From contig BFEA01000006.1 of NCBI GenBank assembly GCA_003427395.1, positions 1,668,737 to 1,732,736 of the forward strand: a stretch of 64,000 nucleotides of DNA. The letters are read 5' to 3'. How positions within the stretch are numbered: the first letter of the stretch is position 1; each line of letters starts with the position of its first letter. The notes under the pieces are model-generated. The model saw only the letters and a list, made by a program, of their open reading frames with translations. It ran no database searches and was not told where the DNA came from. The translations under genes and the position numbers were made by a program. Positions 1,290 through 56,523 of this stretch are shown in pieces. This stretch comes from Chara braunii. Lineage: Eukaryota; Plantae; Charophyceae.

Positions 1290-3448
1290 AATAATAATCC
1301 GGATTAATTCCAGATGAGAGTATGCGCAGCAAATTGGGGAATAAAATCCCGAAACGTAACTCAAGCAGAGAGTTTTTTGTTTTTGAAAAAATCAAATTCC
1401 GGAATAAAAAAAATGTCGAAATTCAGAAATAAAAAATTCGAATTTCCAGTATGCACAAAATATTTTGAGAAAATAAATTCGCGGAATAATTCGGGTTTTC
1501 AAGAAGTGGAATTTGCAAAATACTAAAAAAAATAATTTCGCGGAATAATTCCGAAATTCAAGAAATGAATTGGGAAAAAATTCTGATTTTCAGAAAGACA
1601 AATTCTCGTAAATTCACAGAATACGGAAAAGAAAATCGTGAAATAAAATAAATTTGCAAAATAACTTGCGGAATATCCTTATTTTCAAGAAAATAAAGCA
1701 CGAAATAACTCGCAGAATATTCCTATTTTTAAGAAAATAAATCGCAAAATAACTCGCGGAATATTCCTATTTTTAAGAAAATAAATCGCAAAATAAATTG
1801 CGGAATATTCCTAATAAAATCGCAAAATAAATAATGGAATATTCCTATTTTCAAGAAAATAAAATCGTGATTTAAATCGTGGAATATTCCTATCAAATCG
1901 TGAAATGAATGGGATTGATATTCCGATTATCAAGAAACTATATGGCGGAAAATAAAAAAATAATTCCGTGGAATATTCAGAAGAAATAGTGGAAATGGCG
2001 GTGGGGTGATAGAGCGTGAGGGCGCCGAGGTGGAGGTCGCTTCGAGGGGGCACTACCATGCACCTGCCATAGCCAGTCTTGGTCAACGCTTGTTGGTAAT
2101 CCTGGATTTACTGTGAGAGGAAGGCAGAGATGTGGGGACGGTTAACGGGCAGGAGCTGCGCACCGTACATATCAGGACGCTGATTAGCATTGACTTTTGG
2201 GCGCTGTGCCTAGGCTCGGGACGACAGATCAATCGATTATGCTCCTCCCCTGCTATCGGCGTGATGGTGCTGCTGAATGAGATGGTTTGGGCTACGTCTT
2301 CAGTCGCTGAGCCAGAGACGAGGGATGAGAGTGCACCGGTAAACGTCGACTTCCGGGAGACAGACGATGGACCACACACTGTGATTGGTATCGCCTATAA
2401 CGCTGACAAATGCTCGCCCGGGGCTTCAGCTATGACCAGGGTTGTCCACTGTTGCTTTTACTCCTGCTTTGGACGTGGTGTTGCTCAGGATCTCCTGATC
2501 TTGGGGTTTCGACGACTTTACGATTGTGATATGTGTGACTGTGGTAGCGAGGCTTTAGATAGTTGTGATATAATCCACGATTTTGAAGTTGATCGGACTA
2601 GTGATCGTGGTTAGAACTGCTGTCTAGTGGCAATCAGGGTTTGGGCAACTTTACATAATTAGTAATTACAGCGTGCGATCATCTATTGGTTTGAGCAACT
2701 TTTGATGATTTCATTGCTTATTGTGCTTAGCAGTTATAGCTTCGAATTGTTTTTGCGGTATAGATTCGAAATTTCGGTTTATAGCTGTCCAGTGGTGCTT
2801 CTTTACGATTTATTTGGTTATTGTGCTTAGTAGTTATGGACTCAAATCTTGGGTTGAATAGGAGAGTAATTAGTGTAAGAGAGATACCAAGTTTAGCAGT
2901 GTATGTCTCCCATCGGTTGGCAGTAGTGGTTATGGTTCTAGCATTATTGTTTGCGGTAATTAGTACTGGCTAGGGTTTGTGTAATTCCGAGTAATTTTGT
3001 GTTTTGTGCGGTTTTTTGATGACAGGTCAATAGTCAACAGCGTTTGAGTAATAGATAGGGTTTGAATTTGACTTTTCTTTGTATTTAGGTAACGACCTTT
3101 TTGTTGCTTCGGTTCTTTTTAGCAACTTGGNNNNNNNNNNNNNGTCTCGGTAGCTAGATGGCTGGGGTCGGGGATAGGGTTGGCCGAAGTGCCGTTCTTA
3201 GCCTATGATGGCTTCAGCATCTATGTGAGGGACACCGGGCCCGTTTCCCGGTTTTTATAATGAAGTAGCTTTTTCTTAAAAAAAAAAAAAAGAGAGAAAA
3301 AAGACGAAATCGTGGAAATAACTCCGCGGGATATTCCAAGTTCCAAGAAAAAAATCACTCCCTACTCTCGGAAATTTCAGATTTCGTGATTACTATTTTT
3401 GCACAAAACAAGTGGTTTCAATTTTTGAAAAGTCTCGTAATGACACTA
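1290..3448. mobile_element. AT-rich probable non-autonomous DNA transposon with subterminal GGAATATTCC repeats
   Basis: Palindromic GGAATATTCC motif in ~44-bp units at 1660-1980 and a related motif near 3330. Ends ...ATGACACTA. The left terminus and TSD were not identified. Confidence 0.4.
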
Positions 3449-3744
3449 GGCGGAGTTGAGTCAGGGACGAAACAATCAACCAGGGCTGGATGGGAACCGG
3501 CCGGTTGATTCACCCCGGTCCACCCGGATCCAGATCAATGGAAGTGGGGCAACCGGAAAACTGGTTTAAGCAAAAAAACCTTTTTTTTTTTTTTTTTTTT
3601 TTTGAAGGTGGGATCGGACTGCGCTCATTGAGATCTGTTCAATTCCGCTAAGAAACTTTGAAGGGGCGATTTTTTTTGGGGGGGATGGGGGGGGGAGGGG
3701 GGACTCATGGGGTGATGGTTCCCTTTCAAGTTCCTACCTTTCAC

Positions 3745-6097: not shown

Positions 6098-6430
6098 CTG
6101 ATGGGCATGCGGCCTGGGGGTCCTTTCAGTAACCGTCGGGCCCGTCGAATTGGGCTCGTGTGCAGGCGCAGCATGTAACACTCTCTCTCATCCCCCAAAC
6201 GTTCACTTTTTCTCACACTGGTTGATTGTGACTCGTTTCTCTTTCACTTATTGACGGTTGTTTCCTGATGGGAATGCGGCCTGGGAGTCCCTTCAGCAAC
6301 CGTCGGGCNCGTCGAATTGGGCTCGTGTGCAGGCGCAGCATGTAACACTCTCTCTCATCCCCCAAACGTTCACTTTTTCTCACACTGATTGATTGTGACT
6401 CCTTTCTCTCTTTCACTTATTCACGGTTGT
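6098..6430. repeat. ~168-bp tandem duplication
   Basis: 6098-6265 is repeated nearly identically from 6266. Confidence 0.9.
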
Positions 6431-6616
6431 CTCCTTTGTGCGCCTTTGTGTGCCTTGCCATTCTCCGTCGTCCCTGGGACTAACCATTGTAAACGCACAG
6501 GTGCGGCAGGCGAAGCGAATGGTGGGAAAGAGTCAGAGGTTCCCCTGGCAAGAGTGCTTTTCAGGTCCGAAGAAGCTGATCAGAATGCCCCTCCTGTGGG
6601 TGGTACCAATCAAGGG

Positions 6617-9550
6617 ATGGCAAGCAGTAAAGGACGAGCACACAAGGATGGTGCAGATGGGGGCAAGGTCCATGGGACTATGGGTGTGGGTACTGAGGGA
6701 TGTTCCCCTGCAGGGCATGGCCGCTCACGGCACCAGACAAACCAGCAATCACGTCCAGCTTCTGCTGTGCAACGTGTATTGGTGGACTCGTCCTCCCTGC
6801 TATGGCGGGGACAACATCGTTCGGTTGGAGGACCCACAACCGCTCTGTCACGAATGAAGCAATCTGAGAGTGGCATTGTGGGGGAAGAAGATGCAGCCAT
6901 CACAGCTACTAATCTCCGCAAATGCAAGAGTAACCCAGTCTTTCCATCCCGGGTATTGGTGAGTCACGATCCTGCCGTTGTACGAAAGGGTGGGACTAGC
7001 TGTGTGGGTCCGGCGAGGGCCCAGCGTCCTGGTGCCAGTGGCATTGAAGGAGCACAAAAAGGATGTGCAACATCAACTACCCCAGCAACACAGGTGGGAG
7101 GATTAGGTGGCCTGAGGAGCGGAGATGCAGCGCATCTGGTGGGCAAGAATGCTGCTAGGGTGGAGAACTTACCGGTCAGGTCATCTGTTGAGACTGCGGC
7201 GGAAAGAAGAGGGACGGGAAGCAGCAGCGGTAGAACGAGGGGGGCTTGCCGAGGTAGAATTGTCATCGGGAAAAAGGCGGGTAGTCTAACCAGGCTGAGT
7301 TCCAGGCTAGCAGGTGCAGCGGGCAGCCGTAGCCTCGATGGGAGGGGCCCAGCGGTCACAAGCAAGGATTCCTTAGCTGCTGATAACCGAATCCAGTCTG
7401 GTCCAGCTGTGGGCAAACTGGCTGTTGACGGTAGTGCCCCTGCTAGGCTCGGCAGTCATGTGGTGGCTACTGTGGCAGGGAATGCAGACAGTGGCTTGTC
7501 ATCATCATCATTTTGTGCTGGTAACAGCAGTGGTGGAAAGCCTGCTACGAGGGCTGCTGCAGCTGTCGTGAGAGGTGGTGGGAGAATCGGTGAGGGGTCC
7601 AAGCATCTCATGCGGAGCTGTGGCGCGGAACCTACCCCGTCGACTCCTGTCATGGCTAAGGTCTGTTGCTCGCCCCGCTGTGCCTCTAAAGATCCCAATT
7701 ACAATCAGCGGGTGCTGGTTGCTGGCCATAGGTTGCGAAAATCAAGCAGCAAGAAGCGAAGGAAGAGCTCTCGATCACGTGCAAGCAATGGGAGCAGTGG
7801 AATTGGGAAGGTTTCCCAGGCTTTGGAGGATGCGGCTGTGGAAGGTGGAGTTGCTCATGAAGGCGAAAGGTCGGCTGGTCACAATGAGAAGAGCAGCAGA
7901 GAGGCCAGCACTGTAGATGGTAGTGAGGCTTCTGCTCCTTGTGGGATGAATAAGTTGACCAATCCAGTGGCTCGGCATGGTGATGCTAGCAGACCGTGGA
8001 AGGTCAAAGGAGGAAAGAAGAAGGGGGAGACGGGTTCATCTGCTGAGCCCCTACTTGATGCAAGAGAGGCTGTCAGTCTTAATGTATGTTGTTCCCATGA
8101 GAAGCAACATCAAGAGCAAAGCAGTGCCAGCAAGTGCAATCATTTCTCTGCACCTGCGAATATCCCAGTGTTCGCAATGACCTCAGCCGCAAAACTTTCC
8201 CCTTTTTCTGGTCTGCAATACACTGGTCCCACGACAAGTGATGGTCCAGTTTTGGGTGATGGTAATGGCTGTGATATTGAGTTGGGGGATGAGTCATCTT
8301 TCGAGAAAGAGATTGAGAAGATGGAGAATGCGAATCTGGAAGAGCTTTGCATTCCTGCTGCCTCTGGTCTTTCTTCCACTTTTAGTCAGAATATCAGCGA
8401 GAGCAGTAGCGTGGGAGCCATAGCCGGTGGTTCTCCAGGCGTAGGAGTCACCAGTGGGAGCAATGGCGACCGTGCAATTCAGGGTGCGGGTCCGATTTCC
8501 CTTGGGAAGAGCTGCTTTATTTCCAGAAGTTGTGTTCTTGATGGTAATGAGGCCATGTGGATGGCTCAGACAGAATGCAAAACCACTGCACTGCCCGCGC
8601 ATGACGATGGGGAGAAGTCGGGGGTGCTGCAAGGTGAAGAACGTGGTGTAGAATGTGTCGTCACACCATTGCCCAGTTCCAAGAAGGCAAATGGAATGTC
8701 TGGAAGTGGAGGAATGGTTAGAACCAGTGGTAAAGGCAGGGTAAAATCTCGATCTGCATCCCTCTGTTTGACCCGTCAAGCGGCTATCGCTGCTGCTGCT
8801 ATGCTTGGGGAGGCAGAGTCATTGTTGAGTGATAAAAGGTCTTCCAAGGAGGGCAGGCCAGTGAGGCACAGCTATGGTGGGAGGACGATGGTTAAAGAAA
8901 GATGGGCGGGAGGGTCAGATGAGGACAGCCGAATAAGAGACCGTGTACTACACAGTCGTGACACCACTGTGACCGTTGGCCGTGCTTCTGCTGAGGTATC
9001 CTCTGAAGGAGTCGTGGAAGGACTTCTGCAGCACATACTGTATCAGAATGTTGTGTTATCAGGTCGAAGAACTTTGTGCATGGAGGATAATCGAGAGAGT
9101 GTTGGGGATGTGAAAGAGGTTGTACAGGATGACATTTGCAAGGGTGGGTGTGATGCCAGCGAGTGCCGTGGGATTGAATGTATACGGCTGGACTCCACAC
9201 CGGCTCAGACTAAGCAGGAAGAAAGTCGGAACTCAACTGCGGGGAAGAACTTGTTTGATATTGAAGGCGTCAGCAATTCACCAGAAGCTGGGAGTAATGG
9301 GAACGACCAGGACACTCAGAACTGTTTTGGTGTGGGAACCAGTGGCACTTACTATGGTGATGAAAAGGCCGTGAAGAGAGGGAGGAGAGAGCTGTCGAGA
9401 AGCAGGAGCAAGTTGCTTCAGTATCGGAAAGGGGATAGCCCTCGTTGTTTGGCGGTAAGGAATCCCTCCAGAGAGAAGGCGAACAAGATGTCTATTGCAC
9501 GAGAGATGAACAAGCTAGCCCTTGAGAGCCGAAGACTCCGTTTGAGAAAG
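6617..9550 (+). CDS. Large coding exon (Ser/Gly/Ala/Lys-rich, probably disordered N-terminus) of a putative TPX2/MAP20-family microtubule-associated protein
   Basis: Stop-free ORF of ~3 kb with no TE motifs. Acceptor ACAG|GT at 6500/6501, first in-frame ATG at 6617, phase-0 donor AAG|GTGAGC at 9550. Linkage to the downstream TPX2 exons is inferred. Confidence 0.7.
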
Positions 9551-12500
9551 GTGAGCACAAGTGAGGCAGCCCTAAATGTTTGCTGATTTCTTCCCAATCT
9601 GCAGGGCCCTGCATCCCGTGCTGTAGAAAATGGAGTAGGTGGGCTACTTGGCTCTCAGGGTTGTGGAAGCAGAGTGGTATCAGGCCGCCTAAGCATCAGA
9701 ATTCAATAGGGCATATTGCCACAGTGCACGTCCATGGATATCACAGCACAGGCTTACTGTCTGTGCCTGAGCAGATCGATTGCGAAGTTGCGGAAAAGAG
9801 AAATGGCAGCCTTGTCTTGCCTCTCTATGTCAGTTACTGCTTTGTTGCTGCTTGGTCTTGCTATCTTTTATGGAGGCATAATAGAGCATGCTGCAGTGTT
9901 GGCACGCCGATGGTCGGCACCCCCAATCGGTCCAGGGTTCTGGTTGGCTCCCCGCAGAAAACATAAAATAAAGAAAACCAAGCATCCCCTTCACCTGAAT
10001 TTTCTCAGCGGATTGGGGCTGTGCTGAGCAAGCGCAGTACAGCCCCAAAGTCAGATTTCAGAAAAAATCAGTGGATGTCTCTCTGTTGACGAGCCGGCAG
10101 ACCGCCGGCCGGTCAGCCCTACCGGTAGCATGCGAAACGGTCGGTGGCCGGTTACGATGCAACTCAGGTGTCCCAATATCAAACATCAATTGATCACTTG
10201 ACTGCATTGCCAGTGCGCTGTCTTTTGGTCTTATCCACCTGTTGGATTCCTTGCAGTGGTCTGTAGAACAGTCGATTCAAATGTTTTACCCAAGTCTTGT
10301 TGACACTCACTTGCCCTCTTTGGTGCCCCCTTACACCGTCAGTACTTTATCCAGCCATTTTTCTATGATGTGGCAGTGCAGTTGCTGCGTTTGGCAGGAT
10401 GTACTGAGCTGCTGGTTTGACAAACAATATATCCAGGCAAACAGGTCATGCACGAGGTGCATTTTGCATGGATGATTTTGTTGTGAAGGGGCAGCCCGGT
10501 ACATCTCGCCAGATGCAGTGCGAGCACTGCCGCAGAAAAATGGCTGGGAGAAGTACTGATGGTTTAAAAAAGACATGTATAGTTCCTAGTGCGCTTGTAG
10601 TGTGGGGTCCTCCCTTAGTTACAGTTCCTATTGGTAATGATTTTTTCCCCTTTGTCTGAGCTGCTAGCCCAATGTTGCTGATGCTGGCAATATTGATCTG
10701 AAATTGCTAACAAACTTTTCTGAGCTTCTTGAGATGCTCATTGTTCGACTTGCAACACGTGTTCATAAGTGGCCCTACGAAGAACGTTGGAAAACATGTG
10801 AGCCTGCCATATGTAACTTGTGATGGAGCTGCTTACAGTCTGCTGACAAGTCTGCTGCCAAATGTGATTATGATAGGATGTTGGTGATCCGGCGGGCAAG
10901 TCTGCTGACATGTTTGTTGACAAGCCTGTTAACGAACCTGCTTTCTGTGCCCAGTCTGGTGACTAAACTGCTGATGGATTCAATGGCCTTTTTGTATCAT
11001 CAGGCTGGTGAACGTGCAGTGAGTGAAGCACAGAGAAAGTGGCTGATGAAACAGCGAAGGACGAAGCTGACCACATGGGTTGGAAATGGCCTGGTGAATT
11101 GGCTGATGAGGCTGCGGGCTAACTGGCTTGCAACTTCAGTCTAACTAACTGGCCAGTGACTGGTTGACTAAGGTTTGCAGCACGGAGCTGGCAAACCTGT
11201 CAACTTACTAGAAGTAGAGGCTGACGAACTAGTCAATGAGAAGATGAAAGGGTGATTAATGAGCTGGGCAATGAGTTATCTAGGAAAAACTGTCTGATGA
11301 ACGGATTAATCCCGAATTGTGTAGGGTAAAAGAACAAATTAACTGGACGAGTATCATGGTTCATCATGACTGGTGTTGTGACCTGGCTGATTGAACAGTG
11401 TGCAACTCGCTAGTGATGCTGATAAGGACAGACAGATTTGCAGGCTGATCTGTGGGCTGATCTGCAGGCAAATGGGTAGATGGATGGGTGATCTAACAGT
11501 TATTGAAGTAATCAAACAATGAATTGGTGGTGAGACATCGGACAAAAGAAGAGGCTCTCTGCTCGCTATCAAATTTTCTCCCAGTGAGGGAATAAACCAC
11601 CAGTACCTTCCGACCCACCTTCCTGAACCTTTTTCCGGCAAGCTTCCAAGCCTGTTTGTCTTAGGTGAAAGTGGCTGGTGAGCAGTCGAGATATAGCAGG
11701 CTACGGGTCCTTCAATGCGGGGGACTGGTACTTCTAGGGTGTTGGTTTCCCTTTTTTTTCCCCGTAGTGTTTCCTTTCTTTCTTTTTCCCCTGCACCTTA
11801 TCTCTTTTTCCCATTGGGCGGCCAATGCTGCCAAAGGAGCCCTCAGCGCCGTGGGTGGCGGGCTGCCAAAATATGAGGATGCGCAGGCCCTTGCTAATCT
11901 TCTCTGTATGTTTCCAGGCCTAACAGAAGATTCATTCTTCTTGGGACTGAAGTGCAGCACATTACCAGGCAGATCGCGGAGGACGGGGGGCTACCACACA
12001 CCACAGGCACAAATGACAAAAAACGCTGAATCTTTTTTTTTTTTTTGCTTTTATGCGTTTCATGGTTGCCCCAAAGCCATGCTAACCTTCTCTGTATCTT
12101 CCGCAAACTAGGTGAAGATTCATTTTCATTGTCCATTGGGACAGCAGTGCAGTTTAGCCCCAGGCAGATCGCATAGTACGAAAGGCCTTGCTCTGCCACT
12201 TACCACATGCACGAACAACAAAATTTTGAGGCTGTATCCCTCCCCAAAGCAGTGCAAAATTAATCCCTGTTGTTCACAAGGGGACAGCAAGTGCTGCCAC
12301 TCACAACAAGCACAAACGACAAAATTTGTGCCGCCGTATCTTTCCATTTTTTTCATTATTTTTTTTTCATTTGGAGCATGGGACTCACTCCGCTTCTCTC
12401 GAAAGGTGCAAAAAGAGAGTGAATCTTTTCCTAGAACATGGAAATATATACTGCCATGATTTTTGTCTTCTGTGCATGCCGAGAGTAGTGGAGCGAGGCC

Positions 12501-18261: not shown

Positions 18262-19969
18262 CGGCAGTTCAATTTAAGGCCCCGCAACATAAGTGGATAA
18301 TCAAACTGCTGCTCATCAAAGAGCTCCCTTGGCACGAAATGGCCTTGCATCAAATTCGGAACGTAGTCCCTTTTGAGGTGGACCCGTCCATAGAAGGCTA
18401 CCACTGGATATTAAACCTGGCCTGGAACCCTAGAAGAAAAGGAGGGAGAGGACTTGCAGACAGCAAAGAAAAGATCCTCCGAGTGAACACTGGGCAACGC
18501 TTATAAAGCACTGGAGGGAATGTTTCCCGCTGAAAATACGAAAACCAAGAATAAGGGAAGAGGTGCTGAGGCAACCGCTGTTCGGCAACCCCCACTTGAA
18601 GGACCAGAACGGCAAACAGTGGACATTAGACACGAAAGGTAAACACTGGAGGAAGTGGATGAGCAAGGGAGTCTGGAAGATAGACCACCTGTGGATCTCG
18701 GAGGAAGGTNGATGGGTTACAGCACAAGAACTAAGNCNTAAGCTCAAGGGGNTCCACAACATTAAGGAGCAGTTAGAAAGAATCCTAGAAAGCATACCCC
18801 TAAAATGGGTGCTGCTACTAAGGAATGAAAGCAAATGGACGGCGGGTGACCGGGCAACCAAGAAGGGCAGGGGGGCACCGTCCGAAGCCTTCAGATTTAT
18901 CAAAATCTTAGACTCGGAAACAGGGAAAGCAGAATTCTGTTCCTATGAACTAAAGGAACCTCTCAGCTCGTGGGCCAAAATAGGTAGATTAAAGGCACCT
19001 AGGCTAGAGGGACAACTAAACAACTACAGAAAGGTCAGGGCCTGCACACTTAAAAGGGGACAGAGGGGTAACCAAGCTATACCTTCTGATCCAAGCAAAA
19101 TAAGGCTATATAGACCCGATCTGGACATAAAAGATNTGGAGGTAGACCCGGCGGAATGGGGATGGTTGGTACCCAACAAAGCAGGGAGTGCCAGAAAATT
19201 GGTACCAATCTATGAATATGAAGTTAAAACGGGATACAGACTATGCAATAAAACATCGGACCCACTACCAGTAATCTCAGAAAGGTGGAAAAAGAACTTG
19301 GAAGAAAGCTCGGACTGGTCAAATCAAATTCCGTGGGAGCAGTATATGAATATAGGCCCAGCAAAGATTAGAAGTCTCCAATGGCTTATAATTTACTGGG
19401 CCCTTCCAGTCAATCAATTGTTGGCCAAGAGGAGAAAACAAGAAGACCCTCTACAACTGAGTGCACAGTGTAAAGTGTGTAGTGAGGGCGTGGAGGAATC
19501 GTTGGTACACTGCCTGATATCCTGTCAAACAGCGTGGGACACGTGGGGGGAAATAAAGGGGAAGTGGACCAAGTTAACGGGATGGGAGTTCCCGTCCAAT
19601 CCGCAGTACCTGCTGACCGGAAGGTTGGAGAACGAGGGTCTAGAGGACTCAGAAGTAGTAGCCGAGTTATGGAGGAGGGCAACTCTGTGGGAGATTTGGA
19701 AAGCAAGGTGCAGAAGCACGTTAGAAGGCCAAACCACAAGCTTGGAAGAGAAAAGGGAGGGAATTAAGTGCACAATGCAAACAGAAATAAGGGCTCGGTG
19801 GCGGAGAGACCTAAAAGAACAACAAAAGATAAGGCTCCCGGATAAAAGGGAATTAAAGAGATTAGCGTTCACCAAAACATGGCTCTTGGGGGGCATAATA
19901 GCAAAGCTAGAAGGGGACAATCTAAGATTCACAAGCTGGGACGAATCCGGGACAGCACAACCACTGTAG
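18262..19969 (+). mobile_element. 5'-truncated LINE (L1-like) ORF2 C-terminus with zf-RVT
   Basis: Trp-rich ORFs with the zinc motif CKVCSEGVEESLVHCLISC and the LWEIWKARC motif. One internal stop at ~18504. Confidence 0.8.
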
Positions 19970-23600: not shown

Positions 23601-26600
23601 TTGGGCCTTTCAAATGGACAAGTACCCTTGCGGGTCACGCACACACTCAAACCGACGAGCACTCAGACAGGCACGCAGACCAGCAAGCACCCGCACACTC
23701 AGACTCAGAAAATTCGGCAAAAAGCGGGAAGCTCATCAAGGCATACATTCCATCGGCAAAACTCAGAAATCAGCTGTGTGTCTCAGTCCGTGTTTGGCAG
23801 GTCCTGACAAGGAAGAAGAATTGGAAAAAGAGTTGGAAGAAGAAGAGGTGGAGCAAGGAGGAGGAGGATTAGAAAGGAGAAAAACTATACCAGAAAGGGA
23901 GGAGGTGGCTGAAAGCAGCCGCAACGGGGAGTGGAGACTACGGCAGGTTGAAGATATAGACTGTCTGGCAGATGTTGGGTATCATATAGAGATGCAGATG
24001 AGACAGAGCAAGAAACGAATACGTTCACTGTTAAGATGGCATCTGCAGCAGGTGATGAGCAGAGAACAATATTGTTGGAGGAGAGGAGAAGCACCCTTGA
24101 CCAGCATTTCGTTCAGCAAAAAAGGGGTATGAAGAGAAGAAAAGGCTCCAGGCCCTGCTAATTCAAAGCCGAGGAAAGTTTGGGCCCCCTCACTGATACA
24201 CTGCTGCACACCACCCAAGAACTGTGTGCTGGCGCCTTCTATTTGTGGCGCCAGCTAGACACTTGATTACGCTGCTCGCGCCACACGTTACAACATTGAT
24301 GGAGTACGGCTGAGGAGGAGGATTAGGGAGGTGAGATTGGTCGAATGTGGAAGAAAAGCTTACCTGATTGCGTTCTTTTTGACATTGCGCACTGTTGAAC
24401 GTCTTCAAGAGGATGCTGTAATCAGTTTATTGTCAGATCTCGTCAGGGGAGATTTTTTGCTGACGTGGCGAGTGAGGAGGTGCCTGAAGAAGAAGTCGGC
24501 TTGTGAGGGAGATCTATCTGCAATGATCATGATGGATACACTCTTTTCCACATAAGTCTCATTTCCATTCCCTCAGGTTTTTCTCTGGTTACGAGACATT
24601 GAACTACTTCGATTCTGCGTTGAGAGACTCTGTACTTCGACATTGACGAGCTTTCCATTTGACTGGAGGAGAGTTTTTTTAATTGGGGGGCAGCATTGGA
24701 CACGTACTTGTACGCACAATTGAGTCCGTATTGGGACCGTGTACTTATGGCAAGTTCGTGCCTATGGGGAGACGCAGCAAGCTTCGCTATTTCTCTAGGG
24801 GAGGTCGGATGCACTAGGATCGAGGACTTTTTCAAAGCTTTGAGGGACCGCTTGGAGGACAAGAACTTAGCTCATCGCACATAGTCCCTCATCCTTAATG
24901 TTGGTGACCGCAAGTGGAAGAGTCCGTCGGCACTCAATCCACCATGGACGAACTGCTGCAGCGGACAAGAACTTCGCTCGTCGCACATAATACCTCATCC
25001 TTAATGTTGGTGACCACAAGTGGAAGAGTCCGTTGGCACTCAAAGGCCACCATGGACGAGCTGCTGCAGTGTCCCGAGCATGGATTGACCCCCACTCAAA
25101 TTATGAATAACTTTGCTAGAGCATTGCCATAGCCCCTCAAGAGCCAGTTATATCCCCGTACTAAAGAAGAGTGGATGATATATGAAAAGTTCAGCAAGAT
25201 AGCTCTAGACCATGCTGGATTCCTGCAAGATGCAAACTATTGCCAATATTGGAAGGATTTGCAGGCCGGTAAAAGATGGAAGAACAGGACTATTTCTGAT
25301 CAAGTATAGACTGCAAGGATAATCTCCTGGTCATAGGAGGTGTTGAATCGTTATCATACTACCAGATTAATTATGGTTTAGAAGAGGATAACAACAGCGA
25401 AGTATAGAGTGTAAGACCTTACTGATCAAGTATAGAGTGCAAGGATAATCTCCTGGTCATAGGAGGTGTTGAATCGTTATCATACTACCAGATTAATTAT
25501 GGTTTAGAAGAGGATAACAACAGCCAAGTACCCCGGGAAGGGGACTATGCAGCAGTTGCCTCCCATGGGGGAGGGGGTCAAGGTAGAAGCTGGGGTAGAG
25601 GAGGCTGAGGTAGAGGTGAAGGTTGGGAACCCCCTGCCTAGAGGGGTAGTGGCGAAGGTAGCTACTATGCGGGTGGTAGGGGCTACGATCCCTCGCAAGG
25701 TGGTAGAGGTTCTCCCTTCATAGGGGCTAGAGGTAGAGGCAGGAATTGGCGGCCGTAACCAGCACACCCGAGGATAGCTGAACGGAAACCTAGGGAAGAA
25801 ATGGGTATAGACGAGAAGATTTGGGAAGACGGTCGCAAGGCCTACCAATGCTGTAACTGTGGTGACCCCAACCACATAGTTCCTTTTGTCCATAGTACAA
25901 ATACCCAAAAGGGAACAGCTTCTAGAAGTTCAATTGCCTCTACGGGGACTTCGGACTCAGACAGGAACACAGACGCACGCGCTGAACAGGCACTCTCCTG
26001 TTTGAAGCTCCCAATGGCCGAAACTGTTGCAGGCCCCCACCTAGCTAGTTGTCCAAAGGTTGCTTGTGTTAGGACCTCTTTAAGTTGGTTCCCTCACAAG
26101 CATTAGTGATCAGCTGATCACTCGTCGCCGAGCTTGGGCCAAAATGAATTAGAAGTCAAAGGGGCAGCTAATAATAGCAGATGTGGAGGTAGTAGAGAAA
26201 GAATAGGCGGTTTATAGACAGCGGGTCAAAGCGCAATTATATTACTTCAAGAGGGTTGCAGAAAATGCACGTAGGAATGAAAGTAAAGAAGTTAGGTGAG
26301 CCGGTCATTGGCAAGTTGGTCGATAATAGGGAAATGGTAGTATGTGAGTATGTTGAAGGGGTCAAGGCATACTTTCGGTTGGAGGCAGGGGGCAAGGTAA
26401 ATAAAGTTTTACCCTCTATGACATTCTTAGTGGAGGACAGCCTTCCTTTTGACATGATTTTAGGAACTGATTGGGGGAACGTCGCGTATGCTGGCATTAA
26501 GATGGGTGAGCATGAGTGATGGCTGCCCAGTCCCACACGGGTCTAGAAGAAATTGCGGTTGTATCATGCATCCGACGTAGAGAGTAGTTTGTCCATTTGT

Positions 26601-28126
26601 TGTACGAGTGCCCCTGCGTTCGCCAGGCAGGTGGTCAGGAATGACCTTGATTATCAAGTGTTCATTGCCTATGTAAACTCGGTAAGTGAGGGTAAAAAGG
26701 AAGAGGTTGTACCCTCACCACCCAATGTGCAAAGTTTGTTAGATGGGTTCGCTGATCATGGTTTTAGGTATTGATTGGGGCAACGCAGCGTATGACGACA
26801 TTAAGATGGGCAAGCATGAGTGCTGGCTCCCCGATTCCACAAGGGGGAAGATGAAACTGCGATTGTATCATGCATTCGGCGTAGAGAGTAAGTTTGTCCC
26901 TTTGTTGTGTGAGTGCCCTTGTGTTCGCTAGGCACGTGGTAAAAAATGACCTTGCTGATCAAGTGTTCGTTGCCTATGTAAGTCCGGTAATTGAGGGTAA
27001 AAAGGAAGAGATGTCCATACCACCCAATGTGCAAAGTCTGTTAGACGAGCTCGTTGATGTGGGAGAGGCCCCAAGTGGAAGAGGGTTGCAGAAAATGCAC
27101 GTAGGAATGAAAGTAAAGAAGTTAGATGTGCCGGTCATTAGTAAGTTGGTCGATAATACGGAAATGGTCGTATGTGAGTATGTTGAAGGTGGGTTCGCTG
27201 ATCATGGTTTTAGGTATTGATTGGGGCAACGCAACATATAAGGACATTAAGATGGGCAAGCATGAGTGCCGGCTCCCCAGTTCCACAAGGGGGAAGATGA
27301 AACTACGATTGTATCATGCCTTCGGCGAAGAGAGTAGTTTGTCCTTTTGTTGTATGAGTGCCCCTGTGTTCGCCAGGCACATGGTAAAAAATGACCTTGC
27401 TGATCAAGTGTTTGTTGCCTATGTAAGACCGATAATTGAGGGTAAAAAGGAAGAGATAACCATACCACCCAATGTGGAAAGTCTGTTAGACGAGCTCGCT
27501 GATGTGGGAGAGGCCCCAAGTGGAGTTGTAGAGAGAGAGACCAAGCACATGATCCCTACATATATAACCATCGCTAATTTTTGGCCTGTGACATTCAGAC
27601 GATCGGGGCCCTCCGATTTTACACTCCGCAACGGTCCCGATCGTCTGCTGATGGTTTTCTCTTAGAAGTTGAACCGTCGCACGTGGTGCCTGGCCTGCAT
27701 GCCAGCACCGGTACCATGCGCGGTACCAAGTCCGCGTGCCTGTGTGGGTATTGTCGCATGTTACTGCCCCATGTTACTGGGCCAGCGTCGGAACCGCACA
27801 CGGTACCGGGGCAGTGTGGGTACCATCACAACAGCATCGCACGTTACCGGGCCAGCGCGGGTACCGAGCGCGATTTGGGGGCAGTGTGCGCTTACAACGT
27901 TAAGCAACAAACGTTTTGCGAATTGACCCGGTAGGTAGACTAGACGCCGCCAATAGACGTGTCTAAGGTACTCCACGCCGTTGTGGACTGCCCTACTCTA
28001 CGTTACAGGCTAACCCTACTCGACGACGTTGTGGACTGCCCTACTCTACGCTACTGAAAGCTCTACTCTATGCGTTCAACACACACACACACTGGGCGAT
28101 GTGGTGAGTCCTTATTGCATCCTGGG

Positions 28127-28183
28127 CAGATTGTCGGGGCTCAGCCTCCTGATGAGTCGGTGAAAGTCTGACGAAACAGTCTG
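28127..28183 (+). ncRNA. Type III hammerhead ribozyme, copy 1 (predicted cleavage after GUC at 28135)
   Basis: Stem III CAGAUUGU/ACAGUCUG; stem I GGGGC-uca-GCCUC; core CUGAUGA; stem II GUCGG-ugaaagu-CUGAC; core GAAA. Confidence 0.9.
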
Positions 28184-28186
28184 GCA

Positions 28187-28245
<59 letters not shown>

Positions 28246-30020: not shown

Positions 30021-30129
30021 TCCATCATCAAGCGTAGTATCTGCTCCGTTCAGTTTCGTATCTTATCCGTGGTCCATCGAGACCTTTTTATTTTATAAAA
30101 GAAAGAAAGAGCACGCACGTGCAGGAGCG

Positions 30130-30196
<67 letters not shown>

Positions 30197-30893
30197 CCGT
30201 TGTAACGAACTGTGCATTCGCCCCACCTTCCCTCTCCCCCCCACAGGAGCAAGTGCAGTATCTGCTTCGATCAGATGCGTGGTTCATCGTGATGGTTAAA
30301 AAGGGAAAAAAAAAACAAACACGTCCAAGACGCGGGAGAGAGACTAGAGAGAGAGGGAGAGAGAGAGAGACTGCAGTCTAACTAACTATGCGCCAGACGT
30401 CCCCCCTCCCAACGATCAAGTGTACTATCTGATCCATGGTCCAGAAAAAAAGTGTGCGCGCAAGACGCCGGTGCGCGAGAGAGAGGGTGAGAGAGAGAGG
30501 GACAGACAGCAATCTAACCAAGTACGCCCCCGCCGCCCCCCGCGCCCCCCCCCGGACCCCGAAAGATTAAGCAAATTTAAGTGTAATATCTGCTCCGTTC
30601 AGTTTCATATCTGATCCGTGGTCCATTGAGACCTTTCTATGTTAATAAAGAAAAGAAAAAAAAGCACGCGCGTGCGCGAGAGATTTTGAGAGAGAGAGAG
30701 AGAGAGAGGGATCTAACTAATTGTGCGCCTCCCCCACCCCTACACACACACACGATCAAGTGCAGTATCTGCTTTGATCAGTTTCATATCCCATCTTCTC
30801 ACATGATCAAGCGTAGTATCTGCTCTGTTCCGTTTCATATCTGATCCGTTGTCCATCGAGACCTTTTTATTTTCACAAAAAAAAAAAGCACCG

Positions 30894-31930: not shown

Positions 31931-32037
31931 TGTGTGAAAAGTGTGTTTGAAAACGAGTCTGATTGAATATGTGATCCTTGGTCCATCGAGACTGTTTACA
32001 AAAAAAACAAGATGCAGTTTCATATCTGATCCGTGGT

Positions 32038-32089
<52 letters not shown>

Positions 32090-41000: not shown

Positions 41001-44000
41001 GCGAGCATCCTGGAGTCCAGCCAGGAGTTTTGCCATCGCTGCCATTCTTGGCGATGACAGGCCTATATCTGCCTCAATATGGTTCCACACCATGCGGTAC
41101 ATCAGCAGCAGCAACAAACACTACTCCTTCATCTTCTGGTCTAGCGGCTGGAGCTACACCACGGCCGCCACCTGTCCCACAATCAGGACAACAACAACCT
41201 TGCTACTTCAAAACCCCACTTAAACACCCCCAACCTTCTCAGGAGATAAGAAGGATGAGGCTCTTGACATTTGGGTGAGGACGATGCCAGTGTGGGGGTG
41301 AGGGCAAAGAGGACGATGGCAGAGGAGGAAGTGATGACTGCTGCATCCTATTTAGAGGNNNNNNNNNNNNNNNNNNNNNNNNNNNNNNNNNNNNNNNNNN
41401 NNNNNNNNNNNNNNNNNNNNNNNNNNNNNNNNNNNNNNNNNNNNNNNNNNNNNNNNNNNNNNNNNNNNNNNNNNNNNNNNNNNNNNNNNNNNNNNNNNNN
41501 NNNNNNNNNNNNNNNNNNNNNNNNNNNNNNNNNNNNNNNNNNNNNNNNNNNNNNNNNNNNNNNNNNNNNNNNNNNNNNGATGGCAGAGGAGGAAGTGATG
41601 ACTGCTGCATCCTATTTAGAGGGATCAGCAGCTCGGTGGCCAAATGGATTGGTAGGTTTAAAGGGATTCGGCAGGAATATGGGTGACTGGGATAAGACCC
41701 ATACCTTGGAGAGCTTTATGGATCTGGTTGAAGCGCGATGGCACAACCCCCAGCAGGCACAGATTGCCACTCATGGGTTGCTGAAACTTGATACTAGGAC
41801 CTACAAGTCTGTGCGCGAGCTCACCTCTGCTGCAGAGCGTTTGATTGTCGTCCCTGGGGTAGATTACAATCTGCAGGTCTTGTTGACCATGTTCTTAGGG
41901 TGTCTTCCAACAGACATCAAGAACCTGTTAGCCAGTGAGGCTTGACTAAAGTATCACACCTTTGAGACCTTTAGCAAGAAGGCCTTAGATTTGGAGGCTA
42001 CGCTAGGAGGTGCTCATGCCCCCTCTACAAATGGAAGAAAGAAAAAGAGTCCGCAGGAGTGAAAAAAGGAAGGGAGTTGCTTGATGATGGTCGAGGCCGA
42101 TGGTACTCAAACCGAGATTCTCAGATTTCTCATATATTGTGGACGGTTCAGAGATAGACGACGAGGATGATGCTAAGGGTAGCGACCTCGTTGCCAGAGT
42201 GAAAGGCAAGGCAGCTGGCCGCGGCAAGGGCGCAGGGCAGAGGAGTCAGGTGCAAACCCCTAACCCGCACAAGATAGCGGCATTGGTTCGAGAAGGTTTT
42301 GATCAGGATGTGTGGCGGGATCGTTACACCTGGGTGCTTGTGTTAACTTCCGCAAGTATGACCATCAGCAGTTCAGATGCAAGAACGCGAAGGTCTTGCA
42401 GAAGATACCACCTAAAGGGGGGATTCCTTCTTCCCAGAGTGGTGCCTCTACGAGTTCCGCTTTGGGAAACACATAGGGCTAGTAGAAGTTATAGCTGCTT
42501 CTACTCTCGTTGAAGCGTGTGATGAACCCTCCCCGTTTTCAGAGTTGGCCAAGGCTATCGACTCCTTAGTCATCCTGCAAACGGATCCTGACCCAACGAT
42601 ACTCTGCTTGTTGGATGTGTCTGAGGCCTTAGAGGACCTACAAGTGAGCGGTTGGCAAGGGACCCTCGTGAGTCCTGGGTGGCACTAAGTAGAGGTCCTA
42701 GAGCGGAACACTTCGTTGTGGAAGTTGGTGTGGGGGACCGCAAATGCGGGGCCTTTGTAGACGTCAACTCCACTCGAAACTTTATAAGTTGCAACGGGGT
42801 TGAAAGGGTGCGCCTACAGGACTTGGACTGGCCAACAAAGAGCGCATGTAGGTAGAGGACTACGTTAAAGACATCGTCTGCGCTTTCTTAGACATCATCC
42901 TTGGGAGCAAGATACCAAAAGGGAGAATCTATAGGATGGCTCCGATCGAGTTGCACGACCTTCGTCGGCAACTAAAACAGCTCACAGAAAAGGGTTGGAT
43001 ACGGCCTAACATCTCCCCTTTGGGCTCACCAGTCCTATTTGTACCAAAGAAGAGGGGATCACTAAGGATGTGCATTGATTATAGGGGCCTCAATGCCATC
43101 ATTGTTAAGAACGCAAAGCCCCTACCGAGCATCGATGACCTATTGGATAGGGTGCAGGGATGTAAGTATTTCACGAAGATAAATTTAAAATCCAGCTACC
43201 ATCAAATTGCCAGTAGATTGGAAGATCAGCACAAAAGCGCATTTTAGACCAGGCATGGTCTGTACGAGTTTGTGGTGATGACCTTCGACCTTCGCAATGC
43301 GCCGGGTACATTCCAGCACGCCATGAATAGGATCTTCCATGACTACTTGGATAAGTTTATCGTCGTGTACCTCGACGACATTCTTATCTTCAATAGAAAT
43401 GCGAGTTAGGTTGCACTAGCATGTTGTACTTGGGTCATGAAGTATCCGCGGAAGGGATTAGGCCTGAAGATGCAAAGGTGGCGATCATTAGGGACTGGCC
43501 ATGACCCCAATCTATGACTGAGGTCAGATCTCTCTTTGGGATGTGTGGTTATTATTGCAATTTTGTACAATTTTATAGTACGATCGCATCACCCTTGACA
43601 CTCCATGGGAATCGACAGACGCATGTGAGGATTGATCTAACTCGCCTTGACACTCCATGGGAATCGACAGACGCATGTGAGGCTGCTTTCAAGAGATTGA
43701 AGCATGCCATTTGTAGTGACCTTTGATGACGCAAACCAGTACAACATTGGTGCAGTGTTGGCTCAACAGGAAGGGAAGAAGTTAAGGCCGATCGAGTACA
43801 TGAGCAAGAAGATGTCGTCAAAGAAGGTGGCGAAGTCCTCCTATGAACGGACACTTTACGCCCTCTACAAGGTACTTGTCCATTGGAGGCATTACCTGTT
43901 GCCTCTATTTGAGAAGTGACCATCAGACACTCAAGTTGATCAAGACACAACCTGTCCTCTCTGGCGCGGTCAAACGCTGGATTGAATTCATAGATTAGTA

Positions 44001-46655
44001 TGACTTCAAGCTAGATTATGTGAAAGAAGAGCACGACAAGGTTGGTGATGCGTTGTCATGTAGGGCAGTGTACTTGGGTGCGTTGATTACTGAGTTTGGC
44101 TTATCTGACAATGTCACTCGATCCTTGGTGGAAGCCTACAAGGAAGATCCTGTCATGACGGACATCATTCGCAAACTCGAGGCTCGGGAGAAGGCCTCAT
44201 CTGATGAGTTTGTGATGGTGGATGGGTTGCTCTTTCGTAAAAAGGAAGGGTTCAAGAGGTTAGTTGTCCCATTTAGAGAGATTTTGCGTAGTTGATTTTT
44301 AGGCGAGTGCCATGATGCAACGGGACATTTTGACGACAAGAAGACTTTTGCTAACTTAGTACAACGATTCTGGTGGCCTACCATGCTTGACGATGGAAAA
44401 AAATATATGCAGACTTGCCAAGTTTGTCAGCGGGACAAGCCGAGGACTCTAGCACCACTTGGGTTATTGAAGCCTCTACCCATTCTTGCTGGTTCGAGAC
44501 AGTGTTTCCATGGATTTCATGGATACCTTCGTGATCAGCAAGAATTGCAAAAGGCATATCTTCATAATAGTGGATAGGTTCACTAAGTATGCTAGACTAA
44601 TTGCCATGTCGTTGACGTGCCAGGAATGAGCACATCGTCAAGTTATTCATGGATAACTGGGTGCATGATTTTGGACTGCCCAAGACCATTGTTAGTGATA
44701 GAGATGTTCAGTTTACCAGTGAGATGTGGAAGAAGGCCGCTGAACAGATGGGCAGCCAGCTTCAGATGACTTCTGGGAATCATCCCGAAGCCAATGCGTA
44801 GGTGGAACATGTGAACCATGTGGTGCAGCATCTGCTGAGACATTATATGAAGCCTAGCCAGGATGACTGGGATGAGAAGTTACCCCTCATCCCTAGTCTG
44901 TACGACAATGCTGTACATAGCGCCATCACTGTCAGTCCTAACCAGCTACATTCGGGGTGGAAGCCTAGAATTGCTCTAGACTTCCTCCTGCCTGAAAACC
45001 GAACTGCTGCAACTCTTGGAACCATCGAGTTTGGTGACCAGTATGAGAAATTGTTGTAGCAGACTATCGAACATATCAGGAAATCTCAAGAAGCCATGAT
45101 TGCTTCTGACAACAAGCATCGCCGACAGTCCACATTTTAGGTAGTGGAACGTGTTTGGGTCAAGGCTAGTGAGTTGGGACAGGAGTTCGGCATCTCTAGA
45201 AAATTAATGCCTCAGTATTTCGGTCCCTGGGAAGTCTTAGACATTGTGGGTAGTTTGGATGGTCCCTCGTACGTAATTCGTATCCGTGGTCACCTACGCA
45301 TTTACCCTTTGTTTCACGCCTCAAAGCTTGCACCTTTCGCTGAGACAACAATTTCCATCAAGGAGATCAATGCTGCCCCCAACCATGGATGGTCGTGCGG
45401 ACGTCGACAATATCCTGGAGCACAGAGACATGCCTGTTCCCAAGCCAGCTGGCAGGGCCAGACGGCCTAAACCTGTGAGAGAATACAAAGTACAGCTCAG
45501 GCATCATACGGATCCTAAGGAAGATCGGTGGTTCACAAGGGAGGAACTTGTCAAGACAGCTCCTCAGATTGTGGCAAAGTATGAAAGGAAATTGAAGGGG
45601 AAGGCACCAGCATGAAGCATCTGAGCGGATTTTCGAAGCTAAGGGAGATGGGATGCGAGGAATGAGCCCTTGCAGGGCCCTTACCAGACATGCACATGTT
45701 CTGGGCAGAGGCCCCCAGCAAGCCAAGTGCCGCTCTAAGTGAAGGCGGGCCTAAGTGAAGGCGGGCCGAAATTTGACCTTTTTCATATGTGGGTACTCAG
45801 GCTGTTACAGCCCGTCAGTTGGTTGAGTGGACACGCGAGCCTCCCTAAGTTGCGTCGTACAGTTTGGTCCAGGCCGTGGCAGTTGCGCCTGGGCACATAC
45901 ACAATGCAGGGCCGACACATCAGGAAGTGTCTACAGGCCTACGCAAAAGCAGCTCTGTCGAAGAACATCCTCTGGGTCCTGTGCAAATGCAGGAAACGGC
46001 CCAAGTCTGGAGACTCAGGCCGTGTCCATCTGTAAAGGGGCCCAGGCCCTCAACTGTAGCACTGGGCCTGGGTGCAGGTACTGGTGCCCAACGGGAAGCT
46101 ACTGGAAGCTTCCATCCAGGCCACACGCAGCCAAGCAAAGGCTGCCACTTCCATGTAGGAAGGAGGGCAGCCAGGGTCTGGCATTCTGGCCAACGCGGGC
46201 AGTGCGGTCTTGCTACCGCGCTGCTCCGTTAGAGGCTGAGTGCTGTGCTGAGGCTAGAGCGCGTGCGGGCGCCTGAGAGGTGAAGAGGGGTGCTGCTGGG
46301 CAGCGGAGCTCAAGCAGCCATAGCCGGGCTGCAGGGCGCTAGGGTGTAAGACGGCGATCGGTGGTCTTCAGAAAGGAGGCGAGTGTGGGTGGAAAGGGTC
46401 TGATGAGGGGAAGTGAGATATGTACTGGGTCAGCTATGGTGTTGAGGTCATGTATGTTGGTTTTCGAGAGTTGAAGTGAGCCTGTTGAGAGAATGCTGAT
46501 GTAGGTAGGATAGTCAGGTAGTGTCGGCTGGGTGCAGTGCGCCAGACAGAGGATCTCGGTGCATTTGTGCTCTCTGCTTGTACACGACTACTTGGACATC
46601 TTTGTGATTTCGCAACTTGGTTTTCTGTATATCGTTCCCACTCATATTCCTTGCA
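38017..46655 (+). mobile_element. Near full-length degenerate chromovirus-type Ty3/Gypsy retrotransposon
   Basis: LTRs 38017-39193 and 45654-46655 (TGCGAGGAAT..ATTCCTTGCA), PBS TGGTATTAGAGC 39197-39208, PPT 45641-45653. Gag ~40440-42400, protease FVDVNS ~42750, RT YLDD 43368-43379, RNase H ~43710-44080, integrase ~44300-45330, chromodomain ~45380-45612. Many stops and frameshifts; no matching TSD. Confidence 0.92.
39022..39158 (+). pseudogene. cob: Mitochondrial insertion (NUMT): cob exon fragment plus the 5' end of a group II intron
   Basis: [35 protein letters not shown] is cytochrome b. It continues TAC G|GTGCG, the group II 5' consensus, at 39129. Absent from the homologous site in the 3' LTR (~46620). 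Confidence 0.9.
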
Positions 46656-55560: not shown

Positions 55561-56305
55561 CCTCCATTGGCAGCACTGCCTCTCTCCAGCAGCATGCAGC
55601 AGTCAGGCAGCATTCACTCAAGTGAATGCCCCAGGAGCACTGCCGCAAGTGTGAGGCTGTTGGGTAGAGTGGTGGCTTTTATAGCCAGCTGATGGCTGTG
55701 GGCAGCTGCCTTGCCCACAACCAGGCAAATTTCGTCGGTGCTCCTGGCCCTCGATCTAGATCAACGGCCAGGAGCCCGAAGCCTTGGTTTCCGTTCAGGG
55801 GAACCAGGGTCGTCAGTTCCTGGAGCACCTGGCCTTTTCCCATTCCAGGATTGCCTGTTTACTGAACAGGCACTGTCCCATCAGCCCTAGAACCTTCTAG
55901 GGGCTGCACCTAGTCCACGACCGCGACCATATTCGCGGCCGTTTTCCCCTTCTCTTCTTTTCCTCCCCTCTACTTCTTTGTTCTACGCCTGTACCTACTC
56001 TATCCCTGTGGCCACGTACGCGGCCGCCACTCACTTTTCTACTTCGTTTTTTTTTTTCCCCTTTTTACCCCCCCCCGTTTTCCTGCAGGGGCAGTTTGCC
56101 GTTCAAAACGAACGGCCGCCCTTTCCTCTCTACTACTAAACCCAAGCTCAGCAAGGGGGGGGTTCTTGCTCTCTCCCTCTCTCTCTGCAAGGGGGATCGA
56201 GAAGAGGTCCCTGCGCAAGGATGGCACGCGTGAATGGTGCCAGGTGCAGGCGCCAATCTGCAGCCCGTTCAGCAATGAAGGGGCACAGATTCATGTGGTA
56301 CCAGG

Positions 56306-56375
<70 letters not shown>

Positions 56376-56466
56376 ACCCCAACTTGCCCATCCCTCTCAA
56401 CGAGACCCTTCCGAATGCGGCCGCAGTGCTCAACAGGTGCATTCGGTGAGTCAGTCCATCCGGAGA

Positions 56467-56523
56467 TGGATTGTCGGGGCTCAACCCCCTGATGAGTCGG
56501 TGAAAGTATGACGAAACAGTTCG
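56467..56523 (+). ncRNA. Type III hammerhead ribozyme, copy 2 (predicted cleavage after GUC at 56475)
   Basis: Stem III UGGAUUGU/ACAGUUCG; stem I GGGG-cucaa-CCCC; core CUGAUGA; stem II GUCG..UGAC; core GAAA. Confidence 0.88.

Follow-up and report, generated by a model that had tools for sequence, protein, structure and literature searches.

The locus raises the question of whether two hammerhead ribozymes found about 28 kb apart in one 64,000-nt stretch of Chara braunii DNA (hereafter the window) form a special pair, possibly marking an undescribed kind of mobile element, or belong to something already known from this alga. We scanned the whole window against all 4227 Rfam families, with 48.5 bits as the gathering score for RF00008 (Hammerhead_3). 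The profile, which the initial annotation had proposed as a check, matched positions 28128-28182 (+; copy A) at 48.8 bits (E 1.1e-07), above the gathering score, and positions 56468-56522 (+; copy B) at 46.6 bits (E 4.6e-07), below it, confirming that a complete type III hammerhead stands at both places. In copy A, helix III (28128-28134 with 28176-28182) and the GUC triplet (28133-28135; predicted cleavage after C28135) are followed by helix I (28136-28148), the CUGAUGA core (28149-28155), helix II (28156-28172) and GAAA (28173-28176). The core of copy B is likewise intact, and its cleavage is predicted after C56475. Helices I and II are closed by loops and helix III is open to the flanks in both copies, the feature of type III. 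All 17 standard pairs are present in copy A and 15 of 17 in copy B, where both loop-closing pairs are gone (C-A in helix I and G-A in helix II). The motif CTGATGAG...CGAAA occurs twice in the window, in copies A and B, against 0.09 occurrences expected by chance, and a chance motif is ruled out by the Rfam E-values and by shuffles. A permissive Rfam scan of the window detected no hammerhead beyond these two, and searches with three family-derived patterns of 22-24 nt revealed no additional decayed or truncated copies at up to 3 mismatches.

Pairwise alignment and self-BLAST confined the homology between the copies to about 28103-28191 and 56447-56531 (~85-100 nt), in agreement with the short extent described originally. 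Between the 55-nt ribozymes of A and B there are six differences, every one within helix columns. The outer pair of helix III is A-U in copy A and G-C in copy B, a double compensatory difference, and two further differences from A to B are one-sided and still paired (G-C to G-U in helix III and G-U to G-C in helix I). The description of the stem differences as mostly preserving pairing therefore stood for these three pairs, as did the reported losses of the loop-closing pairs; the change of C-G to U-G that had also been listed is absent. By our own arithmetic, the chance that six random changes would all land in the 34 paired columns of 55 is ~0.06. The covariation between A and B, which had been offered as evidence, was not significant: with two sequences, 262 of 500 shuffles did equally well, and we rejected this underpowered comparison as proof of selection.

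Both copies are solitary, lie on the plus strand and stand beside dinucleotide arrays. The 5′ junction of copy A is formed by (CA)7 (28079-28092), and (CT)25 (28192-28241), which is either a target microsatellite or a simple-repeat tail, starts directly 3′ of the last conserved base. The sequence ACACACA is found just 3′ of (CT)25 and, taken with (CA)7, may indicate that a (CA)n target was split by the insertion of copy A. At the other locus, a gap of 1-4 nt separates the end of (CT)32 (56307-56370) from the unit that copy B has in common with other genomic copies. Given that only 2.5% of the window's bases are 15 nt or less from a dinucleotide array with at least six units, the adjacency to microsatellites pointed out in the initial annotation is real and non-random.

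No tandem or inverted partner of the pseudo-LTR kind adjoins either copy. A Pfam search of the 150 longest ORFs of the window revealed no Penelope-type reverse transcriptase or GIY-YIG ORF; the matches were RVT_1 and SH3_Tf2-1 from a decayed Ty3/gypsy element, Ribosomal_L6 and two weak ones. Neither the Ty3/gypsy remnant (RVT_1 at 42852-43244 and SH3_Tf2-1, the integrase end, at 45141-45467; +) nor a LINE-like ORF with a zf-RVT domain (18563-19969, +) is of the Penelope type. A 1065-codon ORF at 6389-9583 (+) corresponds to a long exon of the host gene CBR_g54824, with a TPX2 C-terminal domain and 99% identity to the NCBI hypothetical protein of C. braunii, which establishes this species as the source of the window. 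A search for predicted proteins in the antisense frame of copy A gave no match at E≤1. The ORF matching Ribosomal_L6 (E 1e-11), which a re-scan of the ORFs at 38.1-41.1 kb did not recover, may represent a gene fragment or an insert of organellar origin.

To place the two copies in the genome as a whole, two C. braunii DNA contig sets (X1 and X2) and two oligo-dT RNA read sets were mapped onto positions 56372-56600, a target of 229 letters around copy B, with a threshold of at least 85% likeness that favours conserved copies. The summed word depth over the core (56492-56515) reached 2.1x10^5 in X1 and 4.9x10^5 in X2, against 4-140 over the flanks, and zero-mismatch, single-copy contigs of the copy B locus had depths of 4.5 (X1) and 12.5 (X2). 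The depth ratio gives ~4x10^4 genomic copies of the ribozyme core, a rough figure (roughly 10^4-10^5) obtained from summed contig depths. For a genome of about 2 Gb, this number amounts to about one copy per 50 kb. Two copies per 60.5 kb of known bases is then roughly the background density, and the spacing of 28 kb is meaningless. The initial annotation had drawn attention to the homolog 28 kb away; a core with ~4x10^4 genomic copies should turn up about twice in any 64 kb.

The contig mapping also revealed how family copies end. Depth rose stepwise from 56468 to 56492, reflecting a series of 5′-truncated family copies, and loose ends marked copies that begin inside the ribozyme at 56477, 56481/56482 and 56488/56489. 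Sequence resembling (TA)n or (CA)n adjoins these truncated copies on their 5′ side. Such truncations and junctions form the pattern of 5′-truncated retroposed copies landing in microsatellites and, together with the repeated core, bear out the proposal of a mobile, ribozyme-bearing family. At its 3′ end the family lacks a sharp boundary, the subfamilies diverging in their continuation after CACAG(TC).

Across the family, no position of CUGAUGA or GAAA varied at 10% or more. At the 10% level, the variable positions were 56480, 56484 and 56487 in helix I, 56506 in loop 2, 56508 and 56509 in helix II, and 56471, 56521 and 56522 in helix III. The family-majority ribozyme has 17 of 17 standard pairs. 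The closing pair of helix I, C-G in copy A, is U-A in the majority, a double compensatory change whose two majority letters co-occur in at least 74% of the depth by inclusion-exclusion, and in place of two G-U pairs of copies A and B the majority has G-C. As an argument that the structure is maintained, this outweighs the comparison of A with B, within a mapping that favours conserved copies.

The read-derived family consensus agreed with copy A at 22 of 23 letters upstream and 22 of 22 downstream of the ribozyme and matched copy B poorly. By this comparison, copy A is a typical member of the major family, a 5′-truncated element fragment of about 99 nt (28093-28191, +) that fills the interval between (CA)7 and (CT)25. 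Copy B is a divergent member of a low-copy subfamily. Its unit (56374-56566, +) has about 5-10 copies, found as contigs about 88-90% identical to it that have flanks in common on both sides; the contig pieces cover 56374-56491, 56433-56558 and 56487-56566, and the flank depth in X2 was 50-140 as compared to about 12 for a single-copy contig. Either the element has a longer form, of which this unit is an example, or a host repeat containing the ribozyme was amplified.

The family is represented in RNA. The two oligo-dT runs yielded 877 and 2079 reads of the core, or about 100-125 per million sampled, with coverage restricted to the core. Read pairs with the first mate on the minus strand were in 3:1 excess, which, provided that the libraries follow the usual stranded design, corresponds to RNA in the hammerhead sense. 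One downstream sequence (0.95 agreement) was common to 556 of the 877 reads and 1250 of the 2079 (about 60%), suggesting that one discrete expressed subfamily or locus dominates the family RNA. Many reads span junctions between truncated copies and AT-rich flanks, pointing to passive read-through. In the 6-12% of the two runs that was sampled, the flanks specific to copy B had zero RNA depth and only 2-3 RNA reads were at least 95% identical to copy B; the copy B locus looks silent in this sample. No pile-up of RNA ends was observed at the cleavage site (56475/56476), for which fragmented oligo-dT libraries are a poor test.

We then compared the predicted folding of the two copies. The free minimum-energy fold of the copy A 55-mer is the hammerhead fold itself, and when the sequence is extended to 88 nt, enforcing the hammerhead gives -24.6 kcal/mol, close to the free minimum (-25.1 kcal/mol). 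The conserved flanks of copy A, CCUGGGC and GGCACAG, extend helix III from 7 bp to about 12 bp, which accounts for the homology reaching slightly beyond the ribozyme on both sides. Judged by eye, the expressed family variant with GUCACAG is expected to pair better in helix III. Copy A thus looks competent in these models and could cleave if transcribed. In copy B, a competing hairpin of the UCCAUCC/GGAUGGA type (56455-56475, +) is predicted to capture the 5′ strand of helix III. The free minimum of copy B in its 88-nt context is -30.0 kcal/mol, against -18.8 kcal/mol for the enforced hammerhead, so that the competing fold is 11 kcal/mol better and copy B probably misfolds.

Considering these results, we regard copies A and B as independent, unlinked insertions of one abundant, short retroposed family of C. 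braunii that carries a hammerhead near its 3′ end, a reading to which we assign a probability of roughly 70%. The copies would arise by target-primed reverse transcription at microsatellites, carried out by a Penelope-like reverse transcriptase of the Chlamys type. The template may be the 3′ end of an autonomous element or a non-autonomous derivative with the same 3′ end. By cleaving after GUC, the ribozyme would release the element RNA from transcripts that are longer or tandem, and the conserved flanks, by bringing helix III to about 12-14 bp, may make cleavage as a monomer possible.

There is a precedent for this in the same species. Craig et al. (2021; PMC8557442) described Chlamys elements of C. 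braunii in which Chlamys-2_cBra and Penelope-like element (PLE) families that lack an endonuclease (EN-less) carry a "canonical 3′-HHR", and reported that 5′ truncation is frequent, that insertion is targeted to (CA)n and (C)n and that copy numbers in C. braunii are very high, as well as non-autonomous Chlamys derivatives with a common 3′ end in Chlamydomonas. Within the literature searched, no paper other than this one and its preprint version deals with a hammerhead in C. braunii. Our family resembles Chlamys-2_cBra and the EN-less PLE-X of that study (PMC8557442) in its species, 3′ hammerhead, 5′ truncation, association with microsatellites and high copy number; unlike the Chlamys PLEs, with which it was compared by published description, copies A and B have no coding part or pseudo-LTR. 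The arrays flanking them in the window are (CA)n and (CT)n, whereas the published Chlamys targets are (CA)n and (C)n (PMC8557442). The assignment to Penelope-like elements best fits by analogy, through the style of insertion and the literature description rather than through sequence identity. Against it we count the type III topology, a window with no reverse transcriptase or GIY-YIG ORF of this kind, the lack of a pseudo-LTR partner and the ill-defined 3′ end; the hammerheads usually found in Penelope-like elements are minimal, of type I and located in pseudo-LTRs (PMC7761336). The initial annotation had concluded that the copies fit neither the retrozyme nor the Penelope model cleanly and may be undescribed. 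The truncations, microsatellite junctions and copy number do fit Chlamys-type retroposition, and ribozyme-bearing Penelope-like retroelements are already known in C. braunii (Craig et al. 2021), so that neither a special pair nor an undescribed kind of element is supported.

A rather unlikely alternative, in our view, is that the family is SINE-like and fully non-autonomous, with short non-coding units that the hammerhead excises, that may circularise and that a borrowed enzyme reverse-transcribes, as a non-LTR counterpart of the plant retrozymes rather than the tails of autonomous elements. Only approximately 50-90 nt around the ribozyme are highly repeated, with flanks of low depth, as such a short unit would predict, but part of the drop in depth upstream of 56472 is artefactual and stems from the divergence of copy B from the major family in that stretch. 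Similarly, the downstream sequence common to most of the RNA reads argues for a discrete expressed subfamily, whereas much of the family RNA is passive read-through of truncated, dead copies. The non-autonomous Chlamys derivatives of Chlamydomonas (PMC8557442) and a 2026 preprint arguing that animal retrozymes derive from PLEs as non-autonomous forms are in line with this alternative; neither copy, however, has a tandem unit. The metazoan non-LTR retrozymes and PLE hammerheads are also short, non-coding ribozyme repeats that probably depend on a PLE reverse transcriptase (PMC7229834, PMC7761336, bioRxiv 10.64898/2026.07.22.740005). They are, however, of type I, often minimal and without a stable helix III, and act as dimers in tandem arrays, whereas the Chara copies are solitary, full type III hammerheads with a helix III of 7 bp that is extendable to about 12 bp. 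Tandem repeats of 150-400 bp with type I hammerheads, a feature of metazoan retrozymes, were absent, both loci having single copies of type III. A tentative possibility is that the family constitutes a distinct, SINE-like type III retrozyme lineage of a streptophyte alga, more than the tail of the published Chlamys elements, which would combine a plant- and viroid-style type III hammerhead of long helix III with Penelope-style retroposition into microsatellites and, possibly, a circular RNA stage.

The type III topology and the loops, which fit the plant and viroid consensus of RF00008, might instead suggest that the copies are solo-LTR remnants of plant LTR retrozymes mobilised by Ty3/gypsy elements, of which a decayed one is present in the window at about 42.8-45.5 kb. 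Plant LTR retrozymes contain type III hammerheads in LTRs of 300-400 bp that flank a non-coding core of 300-600 bp, with a PBS and a PPT, paired ribozymes 600-1000 nt apart and target duplications of 4 bp (Cervera, Urbina and de la Pena 2016; PMC4918200). The Chara family shares with them the hammerhead type, a non-coding nature, transcription, mobility and a home in the green lineage, but it has a 5′-truncation series and microsatellite junctions in place of 4-bp target duplications. The homology between A and B covers about 85-100 nt instead of an LTR of 300-400 bp, no LTR-sized direct repeats were found around either copy, and no second ribozyme is present within 28 kb. A PBS-like site for tRNA-Met is likewise lacking near both copies, the nearest one-mismatch matches being at 33.7 kb and 39.2 kb. 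That the copies are not a plant LTR retrozyme pair, as already indicated by the initial annotation, is upheld by these observations, and the solo-LTR origin is largely refuted and very improbable. We consider it still harder to believe that the ribozymes were domesticated by the host for a cellular function at both loci. Intact catalytic cores, and A/B differences that are confined to helices, would be expected of domesticated ribozymes, but the motif has tens of thousands of copies, the DNA around both loci is non-coding and rich in repeats, the flanks of copy B have zero RNA depth and the hammerhead fold of copy B is 11 kcal/mol worse than its competitor.

With insertions of an abundant Penelope-style family as the preferred reading, the locus itself is of little consequence, A and B being ordinary members of a genome-wide repeat. 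For annotation, a motif with ~4x10^4 copies will recur in nearly every window of the C. braunii genome. In flowering plants, type III hammerheads have been considered typical of LTR retrozymes and viroid-like RNAs. If the preferred reading is true, the presence of a type III hammerhead on Penelope-style retroposons of a charophyte would place a partnership of ribozyme and retroelement deep in the streptophytes and provide a candidate source for the ribozymes of plant retrozymes. Should the family be a distinct lineage, it would form an evolutionary bridge between the plant LTR retrozymes and the PLE-derived retrozymes of animals.

When metagenome contigs were searched for exact matches to a pattern of the family core, only two near-identical contigs were retrieved, Ga0114902_1000484 and Ga0114903_1000585. 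Both are dense in coding sequence and phage- or bacteria-like, and an intergenic spacer in them holds a type III hammerhead of 53.6 bits (8190-8244, -, and 3440-3494, +, respectively). Helix II and loop 2 of this hammerhead (GUCGGUGAAACUCCGAC) are identical to the Chara family majority; either the two converged on a loop that is favoured, or the likeness hints at a common ancestor.

Several other repeats were observed in the neighbourhood of the two copies. Upstream of the copy A neighbourhood, tandem or dispersed units of about 304 nt with 83-94% identity occupy 26437-27524, and a 25-nt tandem repeat (27969-28051) ends 28 nt before (CA)7. Units of ~60 nt resembling the 5′ part of U2 snRNA lie at 30023-30109, 30572-30658, 30802-30888 and about 31990-32040 (+). 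They scored 33.7 and 24.2 bits with the Rfam U2 model, below its threshold, and each is followed by a T/A-rich stretch and then by (GA)n; these units near copy A have the appearance of a retroposon family derived from a small RNA, which likewise inserts into microsatellites. Sequences resembling U6 snRNA were detected at 57064-57162 (-), 12029-12127 (-), 11880-11940 (-) and 56195-56235 (+), with scores of 37.4, 29.9 and 24.7 bits, all below the threshold of 44 bits. The U6-like copy at 57 kb has a terminal T run and no ACAGAGA box. The piece at 56195-56235 is inverted relative to 57085-57125 and 95% identical to it, and copy B therefore lies between inverted U6-like pieces.
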